Part shown: in pieces, positions 28,917-58,918 of the stretch
Numbering within the stretch: the stretch's first letter is position 1
How the letters are laid out: each line of letters opens with the position of its first letter
Assembly: GCA_937625935.1 (NCBI GenBank)
Contig: OW569351.1
Coordinates: 580,260-644,259, forward strand
Length of the DNA: 64,000 bases
DNA from: Tetramitus jugosus
Taxonomy: Eukaryota > Protista > Heterolobosea
Reading direction: 5' to 3'
The notes under the pieces: generated by a model
The model's input: only the letters and a program-made list of their open reading frames with translations
What the model was told of the DNA's origin: nothing
The model's database searches: none
Position numbers and translations under genes: made by a program

Positions 28917-30218
28917 TTACGCAAATACAAAATCGATATCTGTCCATCGCTTCAATTGTCTTGCCATTGTTAGTTTTTTCAAGAAAAGGATACTATCTGC
29001 TGAAGTATCATTCAAGGTGAAGACAATCGTATGGTGCTCACCACAAGCAATTGCTAAGCGTTGAGATGAGTTTGGAGTAATTGGACATCCGAAAGAAGAT
29101 CGAGCAACAGATCCATCTATCAGATCATCTTCATTCAACCCAGAGGAACTGAGGTTCAGTTCACCATCTTCATTTGTACCAGCTGAAAAGATCTCTTCAC
29201 GTGTCACGACATGGATAGAATCACGTCCCATCACTACATCGATCACTGGCGGTAAAGGCCGATTATTTGGCAATATGAATCGATATACTCCGCTGAAACC
29301 ATCAATATTGACTTCATCACAGTATTTCTTCTTCTTTGTCGATATTATGAACAGGTATACTTCATTGTCACACGTTACAATCACACTCGCATCACATTTA
29401 CATCGAACTAACTTTGCTCGTTTCTCTCCTAAAGCTGTTACAAGCCTAAAGCCATCAAACGTTCCACAATTGGAAGGCTGTGCCAATTTTGAAGAATTTT
29501 CTCCACCACTAAAAACTCGACCCATATTGGTCAATAACATACAATGAAAACTTCCTGCACTCAATCGAACGATATACTCTCCATGCATTAGATCATTGAA
29601 TGGTAGTAGGACTCTGGATGCTGAAAGACGATTGCTATTAAGCCAATTCTGACCCGAGACAAATACATACTTGTTGTTGCACACAAATGTCGTAAATGAA
29701 TAAGAACATGCTATATGAGTCACACTCAAGTCGTCATCAACACTATCAGAGAGACGGAAAGGCGGCAATAATTGTACGTCCCTGTAATCTGTCGGTTCTG
29801 TCAATCCCAATTGATAATACGTGTTAGATCCAACACCATACACACTTTTACCCTGATCTGAAACAAAGAAGGATCTGAGGGCGCCACATGAGATCCATTC
29901 GATCTTCTTGTTTTCGATGAGACTTCTGACACGCTGAAATTTGTGATGATGCCTTTCACTATTATTGTTGGATGCTTGTTGGTCATCAATGGCAATCTGT
30001 TGTGACACGGGTGTGACACCTGTTTGACCCTTGGTTTCAGCTCCTGAAGCAAACACTTGACCATCCTTTGTCAAAATAGTTGTAAAAGTGTAACCACAGT
30101 CAATTTGACGGATGGAAAAAGGGAAAAAGGTTGTAATCATTTGTTTAACACTGTGTGCGCCCGAAGAGACGCCACATTGAAGCTCACCATTTCGTCCAAC
30201 AACTCCGATCAAGCTCAT
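28917..30218 (-). CDS. RCC1-repeat beta-propeller protein
   Basis: Repeated IDCGYTFT...VFASG, ISCG...YGVGSNTYYQLG, LSAGSFHCMLL, IACGEHHT. Confidence 0.88.
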   Translation of the reverse strand: MSLIGVVGRNGELQCGVSSGAHSVKQMITTFFPFSIRQIDCGYTFTTILTKDGQVFASGAETKGQTGVTPVSQQIAIDDQQASNNNSERHHHKFQRVRSLIENKKIEWISCGALRSFFVSDQGKSVYGVGSNTYYQLGLTEPTDYRDVQLLPPFRLSDSVDDDLSVTHIACSYSFTTFVCNNKYVFVSGQNWLNSNRLSASRVLLPFNDLMHGEYIVRLSAGSFHCMLLTNMGRVFSGGENSSKLAQPSNCGTFDGFRLVTALGEKRAKLVRCKCDASVIVTCDNEVYLFIISTKKKKYCDEVNIDGFSGVYRFILPNNRPLPPVIDVVMGRDSIHVVTREEIFSAGTNEDGELNLSSSGLNEDDLIDGSVARSSFGCPITPNSSQRLAIACGEHHTIVFTLNDTSADSILFLKKLTMARQLKRWTDIDFVFA

Positions 30219-30247
30219 GGGTGTGATTCAGTTTTGTTTTTTTTTAA

Positions 30248-30259
30248 GGATGTAGTTCG
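30248..30259 (+). repeat. Left terminal inverted repeat GGATGTAGTTCG
   Basis: Perfect reverse complement of 33908-33919; 15/17 match if extended inward. Confidence 0.9.
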
Positions 30260-30340
30260 TTGGACCTCAACGTATAAATAGAACTCTACCTATAAATTTT
30301 TTTGGGCACGACACCCAATCACAAACACAAACTTACGATC

Positions 30341-30511
30341 ATGGTTGCCACATCTCATCAATGGTTCTGTTCCGGCTGTGGTTCCGTCTCAGCCAAGAGT
30401 ATTATAATGAATACTGCCTCATGGTTCTGCCCAGGATGCGGTCAAGTACTGGTTGATTCAACAAGCAATCAAAACAGGCACAAAAAATTTCCTTTGCAAT
30501 TTGCACGGTAA
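30341..30511 (+). CDS. 56-aa double-CxxC (zinc-ribbon-like) micro-ORF inside the transposon
   Basis: MVATSHQWFCSGCG...WFCPGCGQ; TATAAAT boxes at 30273 and 30291. Confidence 0.45.
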   Translation: MVATSHQWFCSGCGSVSAKSIIMNTASWFCPGCGQVLVDSTSNQNRHKKFPLQFAR

Positions 30512-30799
30512 GCCTGACTTGCAAACGGCCAAACAGTGTGAGTACAAATTGTCCATATAAGACCTTATTGTTGATAGATTATTGACTATCGAAGATCGAA
30601 AATCCCGACACGTCAATACCAAATTCAACACATCTTCTACACCAAGGAACGAACCAACTAGATACACAAATAAATCAATATGTATATCGGTTATTCTTAC
30701 TTTTCTTTTGACTCCAAACTTTACCAATTGTTGGTGTTGGTTATGTCTTCTTTTGGCGCCTTTTCCTTGTTTTCCCATTTGTTCATTGATTTTTTTCAT
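30458..30799 (-). CDS. Small F-box-like ORF inside the transposon
   Basis: RITDIHIDLFVYLVGSFLGVEDVLNLVLTCRDFR resembles the F-box consensus; basic NLS-like N-terminus. Confidence 0.45.
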   Translation of the reverse strand: MKKINEQMGKQGKGAKRRHNQHQQLVKFGVKRKVRITDIHIDLFVYLVGSFLGVEDVLNLVLTCRDFRSSIVNNLSTIRSYMDNLYSHCLAVCKSGLPCKLQRKFFVPVLIAC

Positions 30800-30879
30800 C
30801 ACTTGCAAAAAACAGAAAACAAATACTCTGAAGGACATCGTGAATGCGAGTGACCTGATGATGAGTATGAGTTTTCTGA

Positions 30880-31564
30880 TGTTTGTCAAATTCTGTCCTA
30901 CTATTGATACCATTAGAGAGGTGTTGAATTGTCCGATAACTTGAGTATTCAGATCTCATTGATGACACTTGCTCTTCAAACATATCCTGATAACACTGAC
31001 TATGTCAACAAGATTATTAATAACATTGCTAGTCAATTGAATAGCACTGCACTTGCTTCAGATGAAATTGTAGAGATGTTGAAGCGATTGTTGTTGGTGC
31101 CACTCGAGTCATACAACAATGTGCTAACAGTTTTGAAGTTGGAGAAGTATGGTGATATTATTCATTCTCTTGGATATGAACAGAGAAAGTTTATTGCACT
31201 GAGCATTGTGAGATGCGCACTTGACAATGGACACAAGATTTCAACATTTGAACAAGTGAACAAACTGTTTGATTTGATTCGTCCACTGTTGAAGGATGAG
31301 GAAGACCAAACAACATTCTCACCTTCTGACGACTCACCAATAGCTGCAACATTGCTCGAAGATTTCGAAGAAGAACAGAACTTGATTGCCAGATTGGTTC
31401 ATTTGTTTGATAATAGCGATACTGATCAATTGTTTAAAGTTTTGGCCGCAGCCAGAAAGCACTTTGGTCAGGGTGGTGTCAAGAGAATTCAATACACATT
31501 GGTACCGCTTGTATTCTCCTACTTGAAACTTGCTCAGAGAATCTACAATGCACACTGCAAATAG
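30880..31564 (+). pseudogene. VPS35: Internal fragment of retromer subunit VPS35 captured in the transposon
   Basis: ISLMTLALQTYPDNTDYVNKI...LLLVPLESY...EDFEEEQNLIARLVHLF...ARKHFGQGGVKRIQYTLVPLVF is typical Vps35 mid-region. No N- or C-terminus; apparent frameshift near 30920. Confidence 0.88.
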
Positions 31565-31920
31565 ACACCTCTTGTCGACTCTCCATCTTTTTTGATTGAT
31601 TTGGTTGTTGTTGTTGTTGTTGATGTTCGTTGTGCGACTTGTGTTTTTCGTTGTTGTTGTTGTCGTGTCAGAGAGAAAGTTTTTCGTTGTCTTTCGTTTG
31701 GTTCAAGATTGGATAGATAGGTGGATATATTATAAAAAAATACAATAAATGTTGTATCAGTTTCCTCTAAGCTGCGGAATTGGTGCAGTTGTAAAAATTT
31801 CCGTTGAGACTGTCTTTACAACGACAACGGCCATCTACCTCGGTTTAAAAAGCGCTGTCTTTTTCGCTGTTTGATTCAACTCACACAACAAACACAACAC
31901 ACAACAAATACAATAACATT

Positions 31921-33834
31921 ATGCCACGAGGCGTGCCTAAGGACGGCAAGAGAAAGAGAAAGAGAGAGACTGTCAAAAAGAATGAATACTCATCACATTA
32001 CGTGGTCAAGGTCGGTCTGAAGTCTCTGTTGTTGCATCATCCAACTCTGTTACCAATCATACAGACTCAAGCTCTGGAGATTACAAGGATTGCTCTTCGA
32101 CTCACAAGATTTATAAACATATTCGTTTTGAGGCACTTGGAGTCTGACTATCAAATCCCTTTATTAGATCAAGTGTTTCTTCAAAGATTAGGTTCTGTGT
32201 TGTTTGGACGCAATTCAAAACCAAGAGACAATAACTTAAGTCTCATCAACGAGTCTGTCAACATGGACGATGTAGTAGTCAAACTCAGAAAGATTTATCA
32301 GAGTTTTGCCACGTCCATCAATTATGTTGCCAGGTCTCTCAATGTCAACATCTCCAACATGCTCAAGTTCACATTGGAACCAAGACTGAGGAAGTATCTG
32401 AGGGTCAGAATGAATCAACTACACAGTGACTCATCTATTCCAAAGTCAGAACAAAGAAGGGTTGTTGAATACATTATCAGAAGGTTGACATTTAGCACTC
32501 CTGTCCACGATTTTATCAAATTGCCTCCAAAAGAGTTGATAGAGACGATTCCTGTGTTGATCCGAGAGGTTCGAACACTTGTTGATGCTAAAACTGATGA
32601 AGTAATTGATGAATCATTTGTGAAGAACAACACCAATAACATGCTGAAGTTTTACTGGCATGTTCAACAATTTCTGATCAACAATGATATGAAATCGTTT
32701 GCACTACTTCCTTTGTCTCATTTCAAGTGCAGGTGTATGGAGATTGGCACAAAGGAATTAGTTGATATGCTTAAACAGAAGAAACAAGGAAGACAAAAGA
32801 AGGGCGAGGAGTCAACTGAATTGAAGTGTAATCTCAAGTGTTTGAATGTTGGAACAAAGAAGATTCAAATCGACTCTATCAGAACTGACGGTATTCAGGC
32901 CTCTGTTGTTCTCAGACATCAACTCATTGGCAATCACAAGAACAATAAGGCAAAGGAATCCAAGGGCCAGAAAGAAGCAAAGAAGAGAAAGAAAGAAACA
33001 AGTATGAACGAAGGTGCTGAATATTTGGTTGGGATTGACCCGGGTATTGTTACGTTGGTGAGTTGTGCAGATTCAGATGGCAAGAAGTGGGAGTTTTCTA
33101 ACAAAACATATAGACATCTGTCCCACCATTCAAAAAACTCCAAGCGATTGCTGAAATACAAAGCAGAATGGAACGAAATGAATGAGAAGAACTTGGATGA
33201 ACTCCAAAACTCAATCAAACAGGCCGGTGTACCAACAAGTGGTCTGTTCCTTGAACACATCAATTCTGTGTTGAAAGTCGAGGATGATTTGTTGAATTTT
33301 TATTGCACCCCAAAGGTGAAGAGACTGAATTGGGATAGCTATATAATGAGAGATAAGACGATTGCCAATGTTATGAATGACTTTCGAAAGAGAGCAAATG
33401 GAAGAAGCATGTTAATTGGGATGGGCAATGCTGGTTTTGGTCATTGTTACAAAGGACATGCTCCAACACCAAAAGGAAAGCTATTGAAAAAGTTGAATGA
33501 GCACTTCAAAGTGAAAATGATCGACGAGTTCATGACAAGTCAGAAATGTCATCATTGCCATTCTCACATGAAGCCAGTCAAGCATAAGAGAATAGACAAG
33601 AATGGAACGTTGAATGTCTCTGTCGTCCGAGGAGTTAAACAGTGTGCAACCACTAAATGTTTAGTGACTCACAACAGAGACATCAATGCGGCCAAGAACA
33701 TGCTCCATCTACTGAGAACAGAAATGGATGGACAGTCACGTCCCGATGCCTTCAAGAGGAAGAAAAAGGTCGCAAAAGAATTAATCAAAATGGTGGAACA
33801 CCTCCAAGGCTCACTCCATCAAGCTGCTATGTAA
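31921..33834 (+). CDS. Fanzor1-type RNA-guided DNA endonuclease (TnpB/Cas12 homolog), 637 aa, apparently intact
   Basis: RuvC-I LVGIDPG (D373); GNAGFG...HAPTP; rearranged RuvC-II IDEFMTSQKCHHC (E536); Zn finger CHHC...CATTKC; RuvC-III HNRDINAAKNM (D587); N-terminal KRKRKR NLS. Confidence 0.93.
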   Translation: MPRGVPKDGKRKRKRETVKKNEYSSHYVVKVGLKSLLLHHPTLLPIIQTQALEITRIALRLTRFINIFVLRHLESDYQIPLLDQVFLQRLGSVLFGRNSKPRDNNLSLINESVNMDDVVVKLRKIYQSFATSINYVARSLNVNISNMLKFTLEPRLRKYLRVRMNQLHSDSSIPKSEQRRVVEYIIRRLTFSTPVHDFIKLPPKELIETIPVLIREVRTLVDAKTDEVIDESFVKNNTNNMLKFYWHVQQFLINNDMKSFALLPLSHFKCRCMEIGTKELVDMLKQKKQGRQKKGEESTELKCNLKCLNVGTKKIQIDSIRTDGIQASVVLRHQLIGNHKNNKAKESKGQKEAKKRKKETSMNEGAEYLVGIDPGIVTLVSCADSDGKKWEFSNKTYRHLSHHSKNSKRLLKYKAEWNEMNEKNLDELQNSIKQAGVPTSGLFLEHINSVLKVEDDLLNFYCTPKVKRLNWDSYIMRDKTIANVMNDFRKRANGRSMLIGMGNAGFGHCYKGHAPTPKGKLLKKLNEHFKVKMIDEFMTSQKCHHCHSHMKPVKHKRIDKNGTLNVSVVRGVKQCATTKCLVTHNRDINAAKNMLHLLRTEMDGQSRPDAFKRKKKVAKELIKMVEHLQGSLHQAAM

Positions 33835-33938
33835 GTCCCGATTATGTAGGAGCGTTAAGGTGTCTTCTCGGGAAATCATAATTTTTTTATTATGGGTTTT
33901 ATTTCACCGAACTACATCCTTAAGGTGTGATGTGTTCA
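33835..33938 (+). ncRNA. Predicted Fanzor omegaRNA (scaffold ~33835-33919/23 plus ~15-nt flank-derived guide)
   Basis: Stem TCCCGA(33836-41)/TCGGGA(33868-73); stem CATAAT(33877-82)/ATTATG(33889-94); pseudoknot ATGTAG(33844-49)/CTACAT(33912-17); located between the Fanzor stop and the right end. Confidence 0.7.
33908..33919 (+). repeat. Right terminal inverted repeat CGAACTACATCC
   Basis: Reverse complement of 30248-30259, followed by TTAA. Confidence 0.9.
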
Positions 33939-34009
33939 TTTTATCGGCTTTGTAGCCAACCAGTGGTCAAAAAGCGGAACAACAGGAAACATTCACGAGT
34001 TCGATCATT

Positions 34010-36924: not shown

Positions 36925-37275
36925 CTTTCTTTGAAGGCTGGTCATGCACAACGGCCTTCTAGCATGGAGGACGAATCCATTTGTCAACAAGAGTTCTTGG
37001 ATGATTCCAGACTTGAATGGCCAACCATTCCATGGATTAGGATTATGGGATGTTCCGCCGGAGTATTGCGATTACAACAAAATTCAGTCACTTCAAAATC
37101 CACCCACAGCTGAAGCGTCAAAAGTACCCGTTGTTCGTTGTATAGTTTGTAGAGTTCTTCAATGGTTGTTGCATGAACAGTGAATCCTTGAGATTATTTT
37201 GATACAACCGCTTGTTCTTAAGGTGGCGGTTTGACTCGGCCAAGAAGACTCTCGTCGTATTTAAACCTTAAGTGA

Positions 37276-55331: not shown

Positions 55332-58300
55332 ATGGTCGTTCCGGACAGTTCCACCAGTCAACTACTCAAAGGCTCTCTAGTGATTAAGAAGAAGGGTAAA
55401 AAGAATTACGCAATCATTGAACATAGCGAAACTGAATCATTCATCAACACAATTACTACCGAACGTATCAAACGTTATGATGATGACGTAGAGGCAACTT
55501 TTACATTGCATAACGAGCAAGATGATGACGAAGATATATTTACAGTGCAATGTCCCGACTTCCCGAACACTACAACTCATGTATTTGATGTCCAGGACGA
55601 TTCAGATACTAATTCAATGGTACATGATTTGAAAATGGCCCTTCGCAATGGTAGATTACCACCGGATGCAATCATAACACAGTTTCTAGCTTCACAATTG
55701 CGAAATATTAATGTACTGAACAAGCATGCATGGGATCATCCATTGTCACTGCAACTACTGGGCCACAATATCCGCACATACACTAGTCGTCGCAAGTATC
55801 AGTATTTGTTAGGCAAGAGCACTACTGCCAATGATAAGGGACATTATGATGTGAGAGATTTGTTGTTCATACTCCCATCAAACTCTCTTTTAGATCAGCT
55901 CAATCCACCATTGACTAATCAATTCGGTGTCATGAAGGATAACATTGAATTGTTTTCCGAGTTAATGGAGACATTGAAGTTACAGAATTTGTGGTCAATA
56001 ATGATAGATGGTATCCAATTAATGAGTGGGATCACTGTATCTAGAAACACAGGATACATCTATGGTGAATCACAGAAGGTGTATACTATTTCTGATGTTG
56101 ATGATGACGCAATGTTCCAGCATTTACTACATTTAGCAGATAACCAATTAGCCAAGAAAGCTGTTGTCTGCTTGCTTGTCCATGGAACTGGAGAGCCAGC
56201 ACAAATTCTGGGATTCACGTGCACATTCTCAGAGTCGACAGACGTGATTTCAAATTTAGTTACAGCAGGTATCGAATGCTGCAATGAGTATGGTATTAAT
56301 GTTGCTCTACTTGCTGCAGATGGAGGCAATATTGCTGCATTAAAGCTGCTCAAATCTCAAATAATGATACCATTGAAGGATGGATCGAGAATTAACATTC
56401 CAGCAGTGGTTTGTGCATGTCATTTAGTGAAAAGTGACAAGTGCAATATGAAGTTGAAACATATTTTGATTCCAGTTCATGAAAAATCTATTTTACAGAA
56501 TCGAACATTGAAGCCCAAGATGATCATCAAATCTAGGCATGAGGGAATTAACTATTTGCTCGTAACTGGGCAGTATTCGACCACATCATTTCAACTACAG
56601 TTACGAGCGAAGCACCGAGTCTATTATCATGGTATTTACTCTACAAAGAATCAGAATATGATGAACCACTTTGATGAGAAGATTGAGGGTGGTCACAAAT
56701 TTATTGGTAGTAGTTCTCTTCAGATTGGACTTTTGAATCCATATAGTTCATTCGATGAATTTGAGGTTATTTGTGACAGTGAGATTACACTCACAATTGT
56801 TGGATATACAACACATATCGTGGGACTGGACACAGTTGTATACACGTATCAGCAATCAGAATCAGTGAGGAGGGTATTGCAACCAACAGATATACTCACT
56901 ACAGACAAACAGAGTGAGTCTCACATGTCTGCAGTTTGCAGTGATGCATATTTACAAGTTCTGAGCATTGAGTACCCCCAATTCATCGGATTGATTCGTT
57001 TGATAACTCTGATGAATAACACATATCAACGTTGTGTGAAGAATAAGGATATATTGGAGTATTCTCATTGTTTAACTCGTGATTATAGTGATCTGTTACA
57101 GTGGAGCAAAATCTATGGAGTTCTCGACAGCAGCAAATTCAACTTTCCAGCAGCTACTCTAGAATCATATGAATTGAACTCTGAATCGGTCGCAGCATTA
57201 ATCAAAATTCTGAATGATCGAAGTATTATAGAATTTAATCTGCATTTGTTCATGACAAACATGCTGGAAGGATTATTTGGAGATCTCAGAGCTGTTCTAC
57301 GCAGATTCACAGTCTACACATTCTTGATAGTCCTCTCCAAAGTCAATCAGCAGAGAGTTTTGAAGTATCATCCAGAGAGCTTGCAACGAAGGAATAGTAT
57401 TGGTACAGCGAAACACTACGCTAACAGAGATGTCCAGCACACTAGAACAGCAACAGGAACAGTTATTGCTGCTGCGAAGAAGAAGAAGTATCTGAAGAAG
57501 CAGGCATCGTACACACAAGAACAGTTTGGGAAAGCTAAATTGATTGAAAAACAGCAATTGAAGCTCAAAACCAAAGAGAGTCGTGATTATATGATCAGTT
57601 CGTTTGCACAGGAGGCAATTAACTTCATGAAGCTCCGGACAAAGAGTGTCACAGTGGACTCTGCATTGATCAATGCAACAGAGATTGTGGATAAGGAGCC
57701 TGTAACAACAGAATACACTGGTGAGCTATCGACAGGAGTAGTGTATAGTGCCTTGTGGAAACGGCCAAACAGTATAGTAACTAGGCTTGCAGCAGATTAT
57801 GTGTATTGTGATTTTGAGTGGAACGGCAAGAGCCAGATCATATCTGTGTGTTTCTACCATCCCAGGTCAAGTACAGTGTTTTCCAGTTTGGTCAGACAGA
57901 GCAGTGCTGGTCTAGTGAAAGTTCATGGTCTTACAAACCACATGCTGAAGAATTCTCCAATGCCTATGCATGTGTGCTCAGAGATCAGAGCATTCTTCAC
58001 GATGATTAATGCAGAGAAGATTGCCTTGGCAGCATATTATGGTAGGAATCATGATTATCAATTACTGCAAAGAGGAACCCAGACAATCTGTTGTTCACAG
58101 ATATACAATTTGTGATCAAACATATCATTGAGAAGGAGGGAATTGATCCAGATTCATTATCTCTGTCCAGTATTCATTCACACTATTTTGGCAAAGATAT
58201 GTATCAGCAGCATGATGCACACGCAGATACTATTGCCACTCATGATGTTGTTCTCACAGGATGCAAGAACAACAAGATTGATATTTCAACTACTCGGAAG

Positions 58301-58918
58301 CATTTTGATCTGCTTGTGACAACACAGCCTCAATCAGATAGTGAACTCACTGTTGAAGAATATACATTGAAATTAATTGAGAAGCGAGGTGAACCACTGA
58401 AATCAACTGGTAAACGGAAGAAGCGGAAGCCCTCAACAGTCAGTGGTAAACGCAAACGCAGTGGCGACAGTCAACAACAGAAGGCTCAGAAGACATCCAG
58501 TAGAGCTAGTAAGAAGCCCAGTGAACGAAATGCTGATGGTATTGACACTGTCAATATTGTTTCTAACAGACGTCAGCGATCTGCAATAGCGTCATACTCT
58601 CAGTTGCACAATGGTGATTATGGATCAGATACAGAATCAGAATCAGAACCAGATTATGATGGAGAGTATGAATCAGATGACTATGATGACGAGGAGCAAT
58701 CTCACAGAGACTATTGTATGAAATGTCACAAACATGGGGAGTTATTCATGTGTGAAGGTGAAGATTGTGCCAATGTCTGCTGTCCAACATGTGCTGGTTT
58801 CACTGCTCGTCCCAGCTCTGATGCACCAGTTCCACTTGATTGGCCAGACGACTATTATTGTCCACATTGTGAAGAGAAGGAGGATTATAATGAATTTGAT
58901 GATTCAATCCGTCAATAA
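55332..58918 (+). mobile_element. P-element/THAP9-type DDE transposase fused to a DEDDh 3'-5' exonuclease and PHD finger (one frameshift at ~58075)
   Basis: ILPS, IMIDG (D226), AADGG (D330), CHLVK, DKQS, NMLEGLFGDLR (E646); ExoI YCDFEW, VHGLT, ExoII GRNHD; next frame ExoIII HDAHAD; PHD CMKC...LFMCEGEDC...CPTC...YYCPHC. Confidence 0.75.

Follow-up and report, generated by a model that had tools for sequence, protein, structure and literature searches.

A probable young, transposase-less TTAA transposon of Tetramitus jugosus that carries a Fanzor1 gene and a VPS35 fragment

The window analyzed here, a 64,000-nucleotide stretch of contig OW569351.1 of the heterolobosean Tetramitus jugosus, contains what is very probably a young, transposase-less, TTAA-specific TIR cut-and-paste transposon that carries a Fanzor1 gene and a fragment of VPS35 and whose family numbers about 30 copies in this genome. 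The element type is already known; the window copy, as one of ~30 recombining copies, is a well-suited natural instance of it and not a novel type. The family offers a compact natural system for asking what role Fanzor plays in eukaryotic cut-and-paste elements, which in any case leave double-strand breaks and duplicate their target: it combines many young copies, exact ends and flanks, two interchangeable end types, inter-copy recombination and a nuclease under purifying selection, and its strict TTAA target is the TAM shown for another Fanzor1. The window element is also the source of a candidate editor, a 637-aa Fanzor1 that lacks introns and has an NLS-like N-terminus.

The element spans positions 30244–33923 and reads TTAA, GGATGTAGTTCG, an uninterrupted 637-aa ORF, CGAACTACATCC and TTAA, with a distance between the TSDs of 3672 bp (Table 1). 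The TTAA boundaries, 12-bp TIRs, segment length and intact ORF given in the preliminary description were all found again on re-reading the sequence. The 12-bp TIR extends imperfectly to ~17 bp (14/17). The 26.35-Mb genome contains 21 exact occurrences of the 12-mer, compared with a single one of the reversed control, and a genome search arranges the 12-mer into seven inverted pairs spaced 3397–4021 bp apart; this pairing is not due to chance. Among the eight class A copies listed, which share the end type of the window copy, TTAA flanks 15 of 16 ends, the exception being the C24 copy, whose left end has CCAA. When right ends were located via the conserved 3' block, with TTAA not required (n = 27), TTAA came next in all but one, and the sole non-TTAA right end is the same C24 junction seen from the other strand. 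Other genomic copies, visible as inverted pairs and TTAA-flanked ends, do end at the same TIRs, and the Fanzor1 gene resides in a eukaryotic DNA transposon that has TIRs and TSDs and is not of the IS607 type.

The ends had been described as ambiguous between a TTAA and a TA duplication. Both readings parse and predict an identical empty site, but the invariance of the outer T and A makes a 4-bp TTAA TSD the simpler one. The TA parsing would give a Tc1/mariner-type element whose 13-bp TIRs read AGGATGTAGTTCG, and Fanzor1 is known in Mariner elements (PMC3627910); such an element is nonetheless highly improbable. The outer T/A is invariant at 15/16 class A ends, and every class B right end is followed by TTAA, which points to specificity for TTAA; class B would likewise need to begin with A (AGGTGG...), and no mariner-type partner was observed.

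Table 1. Features of the element and its right flank (positions in the window)
Feature	Coordinates	Strand	Basis or remark
Left TTAA TSD	30244..30247	.	TTAA at 15/16 class A ends
Left TIR GGATGTAGTTCG, class A, 5'-GG terminus of Kolobok type	30248..30259	+	
69-aa CxxC...CxxC zinc-ribbon ORF at left end	30302..30511	+	Weak Zn-ribbon matches
Element-specific 5' cargo, without separate host locus	30380..30915	.	31/31 matches inside Fanzor elements
Captured host VPS35 (retromer) fragment, Pack-type transduplication	30915..31564	+	Pfam Vps35
Upstream region of Fanzor gene, presumed promoter and 5' UTR	31565..31920	+	Inferred from position only
Intact Fanzor1 ORF, 637 aa	31921..33834	+	NLS-like KRKRKR, REC/WED N-terminal half, RuvC D373/E536/D587, C4 zinc finger
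Homogenized 3' block, candidate omegaRNA scaffold	33571..33898	+	Near-identical in all subfamilies
Hairpin over stop codon, CUAUGUAA / UUAUGUAG	33827..33849	+	Predicted consensus stem; compensatory changes in L023
Internal TTAAGG, complementary to terminal CC+TTAA	33855..33860	+	Conserved
Pre-TIR hairpin UCAUAAU...AUUAUGG	33876..33895	+	Predicted fold
Right TIR, CGAACTACATCC on + strand, CC-3' terminus	33908..33919	-	
Right TTAA TSD	33920..33923	.	
Flank that would template the guide on omegaRNA read-through	33924..33945	+	Inferred by analogy with Fanzor1 systems (PMC10432273, PMC13565253)

On the basis of full-length profile similarity and the fold of a predicted model, the encoded protein is a Fanzor1, not a Fanzor2. 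KRKRKR lies N-terminally at residues 10–15 and is NLS-like. The ORF has the DPG of RuvC-I (GID373PG), followed by IDE536FMTSQKC543HHC546...C575ATTKC580 and NRD587, which place a Glu six residues before the CxxC of a C4 zinc finger and an RD after it (E536-FMTSQK-C543HHC546...C575ATTKC580...R586D587). In a 36-sequence family alignment, D373, P374, G375 and C575 are invariant, and E536, C543, C546, C580, R586 and D587 are conserved in at least 90%. The three RuvC acidic residues, the zinc finger and the N-terminal KRKRKR noted earlier are all present in the ORF. The ORF matches Pfam Cas12f1-like_TNB (E 7e-10), and its top hit in a PDB sequence search is SpuFz1 (E 1.9e-13). A family profile searched against the PDB finds SpuFz1 at E 4.5e-83 (profile positions 8–596), PpFz1 at 5e-59 and GtFz1 at 3e-51, whereas Fanzor2 reaches just 2e-8, in the zinc-finger region only, and TnpB ~1e-3. 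An AF2 model of the protein (pLDDT 87.6) retrieves SpuFz1 with Foldseek at E 1e-23 and TM 0.68/0.71; TM values are 0.61–0.71 for Fanzor1 versus 0.23 for Fanzor2, and the likeness to solved Fanzor1 is full-length, including the enlarged N-terminal REC/WED half. Comparison with TnpB, Fanzor1 and Fanzor2 by profile and fold thus upholds the Fanzor1 assignment of the preliminary description, but not one of its reasons: the Glu before the zinc finger is no Fanzor1 marker, because Fanzor2 has it too, and both it and DPG are common to the two groups (PMC10711439).

SpuFz1 (Spizellomyces punctatus, PDB 8GKH, 9CEU-9CEZ), the top match by sequence, profile and fold, shares with the window protein the DPG / E-x6-CxxC / RD layout and an extensive helical N-terminal half and is of comparable size, but is only 17–19% identical to it in structural alignment, recognizes a CATA TAM and has another transposon context. 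GtFz1 (Guillardia theta, PDB 9CER), a Fanzor1 farther away than SpuFz1, has a 5'-TTAA TAM, as shown by experiment (PMC10432273, PMC11423790), and this motif forms both TSDs of the window element. TTAA may be the TAM of the window Fanzor1 as well and is a candidate for this role.

Genome-wide, 66 matches to the Fanzor protein were found, 19 of them full-length and without stops and many others fragments, in a family of ~30 element copies that also includes truncated and frameshifted ones. The dN/dS of the ORF core between subfamilies is 0.12–0.17; the nuclease gene is under purifying selection. The claim that the element is young is borne out, the closest copies being 99.1–99.7% identical with a dS of 0.010–0.013. 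Two end classes exist: class A has the 12-bp TIR GGATGTAGTTCG, and class B begins GGTGGCGGT. Both read TTAA, GG...CC, TTAA, each Fanzor subfamily is found with both, and the two end types are interchangeable. Identity between copies is 50–80% in the ORF cores and 95–100% in the 5' cargo and the last 260–330 bp. Diverged ORF cores between near-identical flanking parts point to frequent recombination between copies, and on this pattern of sequence identity the copies are mosaics made by inter-copy recombination. The nuclease and ends of the simple element first described are both there, but ~1.3 kb of 5' cargo, a mosaic family and two end types have to be added. The window also holds a 46-bp TTAA-flanked mini-remnant at 37218–37271.

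The ~1.3-kb cargo occupies the 5' half of the element and includes the VPS35 fragment. The zinc-ribbon ORF at its left is confined, in this genome, to class A Fanzor elements and may be a remnant of a gene of the parental element. RNA-library contigs from a soil metatranscriptome reach a depth of 245–533 at 30406–30801, versus 0–5 over the Fanzor ORF, and leave the element at positions 30915 and 31554. The VPS35 fragment matches the Pfam Vps35 profile at E 1.4e-44 (positions 330–526 of 726), is 97–100% identical in >20 elements, which come from both end classes, and shares 99% identity with the host gene at C22:83284-83910, where the host copy lies inside a 450-aa open frame. A host gene fragment is therefore found between the TIRs and its source gene elsewhere in the genome. 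The arrangement resembles Pack-MULE-type transduplication, in which the host fragment likewise sits between TIRs and is amplified with the element, although the carrier there is a plant MULE and here a Fanzor element in a protist. The region upstream of the Fanzor gene is kept among copies, with small indels.

No transposase ORF is present among the ORFs of any copy, so mobilization must occur in trans, as had been proposed for a non-autonomous element. A search of the genome for an autonomous partner with class A or class B ends found none. The preliminary description had left the mobilizing superfamily open; the ends narrow the choice. Kolobok elements, reported in Naegleria, have a TTAA TSD and 5'-RR/YY-3' termini (PMC9587614). 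The window element has a TTAA-specific 4-bp TSD, and its 5'-RR...YY-3' termini take the form GG...CC in both classes and in the metagenomic relatives L023, L057 and L009. The TTAA TSD and 5'-GG...CC-3' termini somewhat favor a Kolobok-type element, which would resemble Kolobok in its duplication and GG/CC-compatible ends but lacks a linked Kolobok transposase here. An association of Fanzor with Kolobok is not described in the literature examined; a Kolobok transposase as the partner would add one superfamily to the Fanzor carriers.

A non-autonomous piggyBac-superfamily element mobilized by an intact resident transposase is an unlikely alternative to Kolobok, even though a TTAA TSD is the classic mark of piggyBac, PF13843 is matched 12 times in the genome, in several cases within a long open frame, and Repbase lists Fanzor in piggyBac elements according to a 2026 review (PMC13565253). 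GG...CC termini are the feature that parts Kolobok from piggyBac (PMC9587614), and those of the window element are not CC...GG. The two resident piggyBac families with readable ends have unrelated TIRs and non-TTAA flanks, namely CGGCCAGATTTTACC (CGGCCAG...) with AATT/AAAT and CCACCG... with ATAT, and the surroundings of the piggyBac ORFs contain no TIR of the Fanzor type. A P/THAP9-like, transposase-like family is present in the window (55332–58115, a copy without TIRs) and as paralogues, and the only hint of a link is that a distant fragment lies 2.8 kb away from an isolated class B end on C32. Transposase-less Fanzor1 elements are also described in insect-virus genomes: HVav-1, SFav-1, PUgv-1, HAgv-1 and HAmn-1 have 4-bp TTAN TSDs and 13-bp TIRs and were left unclassified (Bao & Jurka 2013, PMC3627910), and the window element is likened to them by this description, with a different host.

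The 3'-terminal block probably encodes the omegaRNA of the nuclease, a candidate assignment drawn from conservation, predicted folding and RNA-library depth. An omegaRNA lies at this position in every characterized Fanzor (PMC10432273, PMC10530073), and solved Fanzor structures place the 3' TSD within the omegaRNA scaffold (PMC13565253). The block begins at 33571 in comparison with the 65% subfamily and at 33640 with the 83% subfamily, and extends to the point at which the two end classes part. Over the last 71 codons, dS is 0–0.07, versus 0.24 to saturated in the core. The internal TTAAGG adjoins the stop codon in lineages of 43–100% protein identity, and TTAAGG...CCTTAA closes a terminal helix in 4/5 lineages. 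Class A/B differences at 33867 and 33876 preserve or improve pairing, and the 3'-end folds are stabler than shuffled sequence (z -2.2 to -6.9); the RNAalifold consensus, from six poorly aligned sequences, adds thin support. RNA-library depth is 35–93 over 33644–33931 versus 0–5 over the ORF, a ratio that is just 2–3 in a DNA run, the reads being assembled contigs blind to RNA ends, strand and level.

Recombination confounds this case. The near-identity of the block is at least partly explained by it, as the start differs among subfamilies; the VPS35 cargo, presumably functionless, is equally homogeneous; and the conservation is absent in L023, an element of a related species (dS 0.73). The block could be a mere gene-conversion tract, its TTAAGG...CCTTAA repeat acting on DNA as a nested MITE-like end or transposase-binding site, with no omegaRNA, and the shifting start and homogeneous cargo fit this reading, as do the similarity of TTAAGG plus GTG to a degenerate class B left end and the TTAA-flanked mini-remnant. 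It is nevertheless improbable given that TTAAGG stays beside the stop codon down to 43% protein identity, that the folds beat shuffled sequence, that RNA libraries are enriched for the block over the ORF and that characterized Fanzors all have their omegaRNA there.

Under the omegaRNA reading, a role for the nuclease can be proposed, to which we give an even chance. Transcription of the RNA would continue through the right-hand TIR and TSD and on beyond the element; Fanzor1 would be loaded with a flank-derived guide from that RNA; with TTAA as TAM, as tested for GtFz1, the complex would cut the vacated or empty TTAA site; and the element would be copied back by homologous repair. If non-allelic copies served as templates, this would account for the mosaic structure. 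The proposal meets a self-targeting problem, because the occupied right junction, CC-TTAA-flank, retains both TTAA and the guide match. A wider scenario, possible but tentative, is a Fanzor1 lineage co-evolving with Kolobok-type TTAA transposons, in which the TSD equals the TAM, the TTAAGG...CC+TTAA helix forms the scaffold/guide boundary, and the mosaic structure, with its old ORF cores inside young backbones common to the copies (~30, two interchangeable end types), is the footprint of Fanzor-triggered homologous repair. In that case the family would be a natural record of "restorative homing" by an OMEGA system borne on a eukaryotic DDE transposon.

An empty-site allele was also looked for, and neither an empty site nor an insertion polymorphism was seen in the metatranscriptome contigs and DNA data examined. 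This result, the missing autonomous partner and the truncated and frameshifted copies would suit a recently silenced fossil, with ends and ORFs intact, no recognizing transposase left, recombination as the only activity and a Fanzor without a present role. Such a fossil is somewhat unlikely: copies 99.1–99.7% identical lie at different loci with different flanks, 19 ORFs are uninterrupted at a dN/dS of 0.12–0.17, and the ORF is seen, at low depth, in metatranscriptome contigs.

The nuclease encoded by the element is a Fanzor1, as whole-length profile and fold similarity show. Its open reading frame (ORF) carries KRKRKR at residues 10–15, the motifs GID373PG, IDE536FMTSQKCHHC and NRD587, and a second cysteine pair, C575/C580. 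Pfam recognized Cas12f1-like_TNB in it (E 7e-10) and, weakly, OrfB_IS605, and a PDB sequence search returned SpuFz1 as the sole significant match. Across 1.8 billion representatives, searched exhaustively, 1749 relatives were found, just 6 of them below 1e-30. A family profile built from 36 full-length relatives matched solved Fanzor1 proteins over almost all of its own length (SpuFz1, 4.5e-83; PpFz1, 5e-59; GtFz1, 3e-51), whereas its matches to Mimivirus Fanzor2 (2e-8) and TnpB (~1e-3) were both limited to the zinc-finger region. With the AlphaFold model of the protein, which is confident (pLDDT 87.6, pTM 0.83), the top Foldseek ranks went to three Fanzor1 structures (E 1e-23 to 4e-16, TM 0.61–0.71), against a TM of 0.23 for Fanzor2. 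The intact Fanzor1 of the preliminary description is thereby upheld, Fanzor1 being by far the best match in the comparison with TnpB and Fanzor2. The glutamate before the zinc finger, which had been taken to mark Fanzor1, does not do so: DPG and a glutamate six residues ahead of the zinc finger are common to Fanzor1 and Fanzor2 (PMC10711439), and the assignment therefore rests on the whole-length evidence. The characterized Naegleria protein NlovFz2 is a Fanzor2 (PMC10432273); we found no published description of a Fanzor1 in this genus or its relatives.

The element measures 3672 bp from one target-site duplication (TSD) to the other. The exact 12-mer of its terminal inverted repeats (TIRs) occurs 21 times in the genome (26.35 Mb, 56 contigs), against once for the reversed control, and forms seven inverted pairs genome-wide at a spacing of 3.4–4.0 kb. 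TTAA flanks 15 of the 16 ends of the eight listed copies with this end type, designated class A. The 12-mer ends are no chance match, and the TTAA duplications around 12-bp TIRs first proposed for the window agree with both the genome counts and the flanks. The other parse entertained initially, a TA duplication with 13-bp TIRs, predicts an identical empty site; comparing the flanks of the copies makes the 4-bp TTAA duplication the simpler reading, given the invariant outer T and A. The genome assembly contains no empty-site allele, and no joint across 30247/33920 is among those listed in four sequencing runs (assembled contigs); the match of one metatranscriptome contig breaks off exactly at 30244, and the contig continues into unrelated sequence, which is uninformative on the empty site. 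The element lies 26 bp upstream of the ATG (at 30218) of an RCC1-repeat protein gene (28917–30218, minus strand), which puts it in the promoter or 5′ UTR of this gene.

Coordinates of the Fanzor element features and of the transposase-like ORFs in the window
Feature	Position	Strand	Remarks
Left TSD TTAA	30244-30247		read from sequence
Left TIR GGATGTAGTTCG	30248-30259		read from sequence
Fanzor1 ORF	31921-33834		637 aa
Right TIR CGAACTACATCC	33908-33919		read from sequence
Right TSD TTAA	33920-33923		read from sequence
P-element/THAP9-like ORF	55332-58115	+	927 aa; RNase H N-terminal domain PF21787, weak, E 1e-4
ORF following the 927-aa ORF	58091-58918		275 aa; faint PHD-finger match

The Fanzor protein has 66 matches in the genome, 19 of them full-length without stops, in subfamilies at about 100, 95, 91, 83 and 65% identity. 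Anchoring on the 3′ end revealed two right-end types, class A (...TTATTTCACCGAACTACATCC followed by TTAA) and class B (...GATCGACAGTAGACCGCCACC followed by TTAA), which diverge exactly past window position 33898. Class B ends start with GGTGGCGGT; the TIR common to their left and right ends is only about 9–11 bp, and the class B 17-mer was found in right ends only in a genome search. Compact class B elements (2.55–2.77 kb) apparently carry Fanzor alone, and longer ones (3.2–4.6 kb) a VPS35 fragment as well. In the window element this fragment is the ORF at 30929–31564 (Pfam E 1.4e-44, profile positions 330–526 of 726); it is 97–100% identical in over 20 elements, class A and class B alike, and 99% identical to C22:83284-83910, a stretch of another contig that lies inside a 450-aa open frame and looks like the host VPS35 gene. 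By genome search, region 30380–30915 is confined to Fanzor elements. Contig depth over 30406–30801 was 245–533 in two soil metatranscriptomes, with 0–5 over the Fanzor ORF and 6–40 over the flanking host genes; an abundant RNA may come from this 5′ cargo.

The Fanzor copies are mosaics. Compared with the copy on contig C1, the 5′ cargo (30437–31637) and the last ~290 bp are 94–100% identical, whereas the ORF core is only 50–78% identical; dS is 0–0.07 in the last 71 codons and from 0.24 to saturated in the core. Where the homogeneous 3′ block begins depends on the subfamily compared: 33571 for the 65% subfamily, 33640 for the 83% subfamily. Both end classes are represented in each subfamily; copies must therefore frequently recombine or undergo gene conversion with one another. 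Between subfamilies, the ORF core has a dN/dS of 0.12–0.17 (Nei–Gojobori), so purifying selection acted on the nuclease as the family diversified. The nearest copies are 99.1–99.7% identical, with dS of 0.010–0.013 and different flanks; amplification was therefore recent, which bears out the young age proposed for the element.

The element was also described as non-autonomous, and no family copy has an ORF encoding a transposase; a genome search for an autonomous partner with Fanzor ends found none. Kolobok elements, reported in Naegleria, are defined by a TTAA TSD and 5′-RR...YY-3′ termini, “unlike piggyBac” (PMC9587614), and both Fanzor end classes fit this definition because they combine GG...CC termini with a TTAA TSD. 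We lean slightly towards a Kolobok-type partner. A piggyBac partner is improbable: piggyBac transposase genes are present in the genome, but the readable ends of two families, one with CGGCCAGATTTTACC TIRs and AATT/AAAT flanks and the other with CCACCG... termini and ATAT flanks, differ from those of the Fanzor element, and nine piggyBac loci hold neither a TTAA-flanked TIR of at least 10 bp nor a Fanzor-type TIR. Both sets of flanks are unusual target sites for piggyBac. Copies with intact ORFs (L017:4592-6524 and L018:4509-6441; L015:3301-6916 and L016:4337-7949, all on retrieved stretches) are without TTAA flanks. A left-end zinc-ribbon ORF (69 aa) was considered as a route to the partner and rejected, as a genome search found it confined to class A Fanzor elements. 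The 927-aa ORF in the window was detected with the P-element-like RNase H family; it has a 62% paralogue on contig C11, several decayed copies in the genome, and THAP9/P-like clusters as its nearest in a protein atlas. Neither a word-based search nor a PDB sequence search returned homologues, and no TIRs were found around it in the window. It could be a domesticated or immobilized transposase of the P/Kolobok/hAT group. On contig C32, a distant transposase fragment and a lone class B end lie 2.8 kb apart, the sole hint of a link to Fanzor ends; no candidate for the absent partner other than the 927-aa ORF was seen.

The 3′ block likely encodes a candidate omegaRNA, as yet unproven. In its favor, synonymous sites are frozen over the last 71 codons, a hairpin over the stop codon shows compensatory changes in the metagenomic relative L023, and a TTAAGG motif adjoins the stop codon in all lineages, even at a protein identity of 43%. 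In the minimum-energy fold of four of five lineages (z −2.2 to −6.9), TTAAGG(UG) pairs with the terminal (CA)CC and UUAA, enclosing a hairpin, in agreement with solved Fanzor structures, whose scaffold includes the 3′ TSD (PMC13565253). Contig depth in two soil metatranscriptomes was 35–93 over 33644–33931 against 0–5 over the ORF, a ratio that is only 2–3 in a DNA run; all read evidence on this block consists of assembled contigs. Against this, the VPS35 cargo is equally homogeneous, the 3′ block is not conserved in L023, and the whole 326-nt 3′ region folds no more stably than shuffled sequence (z −1.3); RNAalifold on six sequences recovered the stop-codon hairpin as the only structure. In one RNA-library contig, position 33736 is followed immediately by a class B end with TTAA and flank; the contig derives from an internally deleted copy and is not assignable as omegaRNA read-through.

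By analogy with TnpB and tested Fanzor1 proteins, transcription of the RNA would run across the right TIR and TSD and on into the flank, and the nuclease would take TTAA as its target-adjacent motif (TAM), as shown for GtFz1 (PMC10432273, PMC11423790). A vacated TTAA site would then be cut and the element restored through homologous repair, which from non-allelic copies would generate the observed mosaics. The occupied right junction also presents TTAA and a guide match; either the TAM would extend upstream, with the invariant CC as a candidate anti-determinant, or there would be another safeguard.

Since 2013, several superfamilies of TIR transposons have been known to include non-autonomous elements with Fanzor1 genes, and unclassified viral Fanzor1 families that pair 13-bp TIRs with TTAN TSDs are also on record (PMC3627910). 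A 2026 review, drawing on Repbase, extends the list to hAT, EnSpm, piggyBac and others, with Kolobok absent (PMC13565253). The present element is genuine and well preserved, a useful model rather than a new category. What adds interest is that its ends are of Kolobok type, that the family has two end classes which are interchangeable, and that VPS35 capture is combined with pervasive recombination.

Metagenomic relatives have class B ends at 75% (L023) and 59% (L057) protein identity, and class A ends at 43% (L009, frameshifted). Two others (L055:2437-4560 and L056:1631-3900; about 61–62% identity) have no TTAA end or TIR and are alike for just ~35 nt past the stop codon (...CTACTCTAT); these genes may be carried by another type of element or by none. 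A metagenome scan for further relatives gave a single 1.2-kb fragment. Solitary class A right ends of 35 bp, with TTAA, occur at C47:119538-119572 (L013:3997-4031) and C52:91097-91131, with no partner end within 4 kb; they are truncated remnants, not MITEs. In the window, a 46-bp segment at 37218–37271 starts with GGTGGCGGTTTGACTCGG, ends with AAACC and has TTAA on both sides; its start matches the class B left end (compare L023), and the segment resembles a class B element that has been internally deleted or reduced to a remnant. Finally, 30–70% of sampled 31-mers of the window are present in runs X5–X20 (soil, groundwater, freshwater and rhizosphere metagenomes and soil metatranscriptomes from 11 studies), and the organism or close relatives, with the Fanzor element family, are therefore environmentally widespread.
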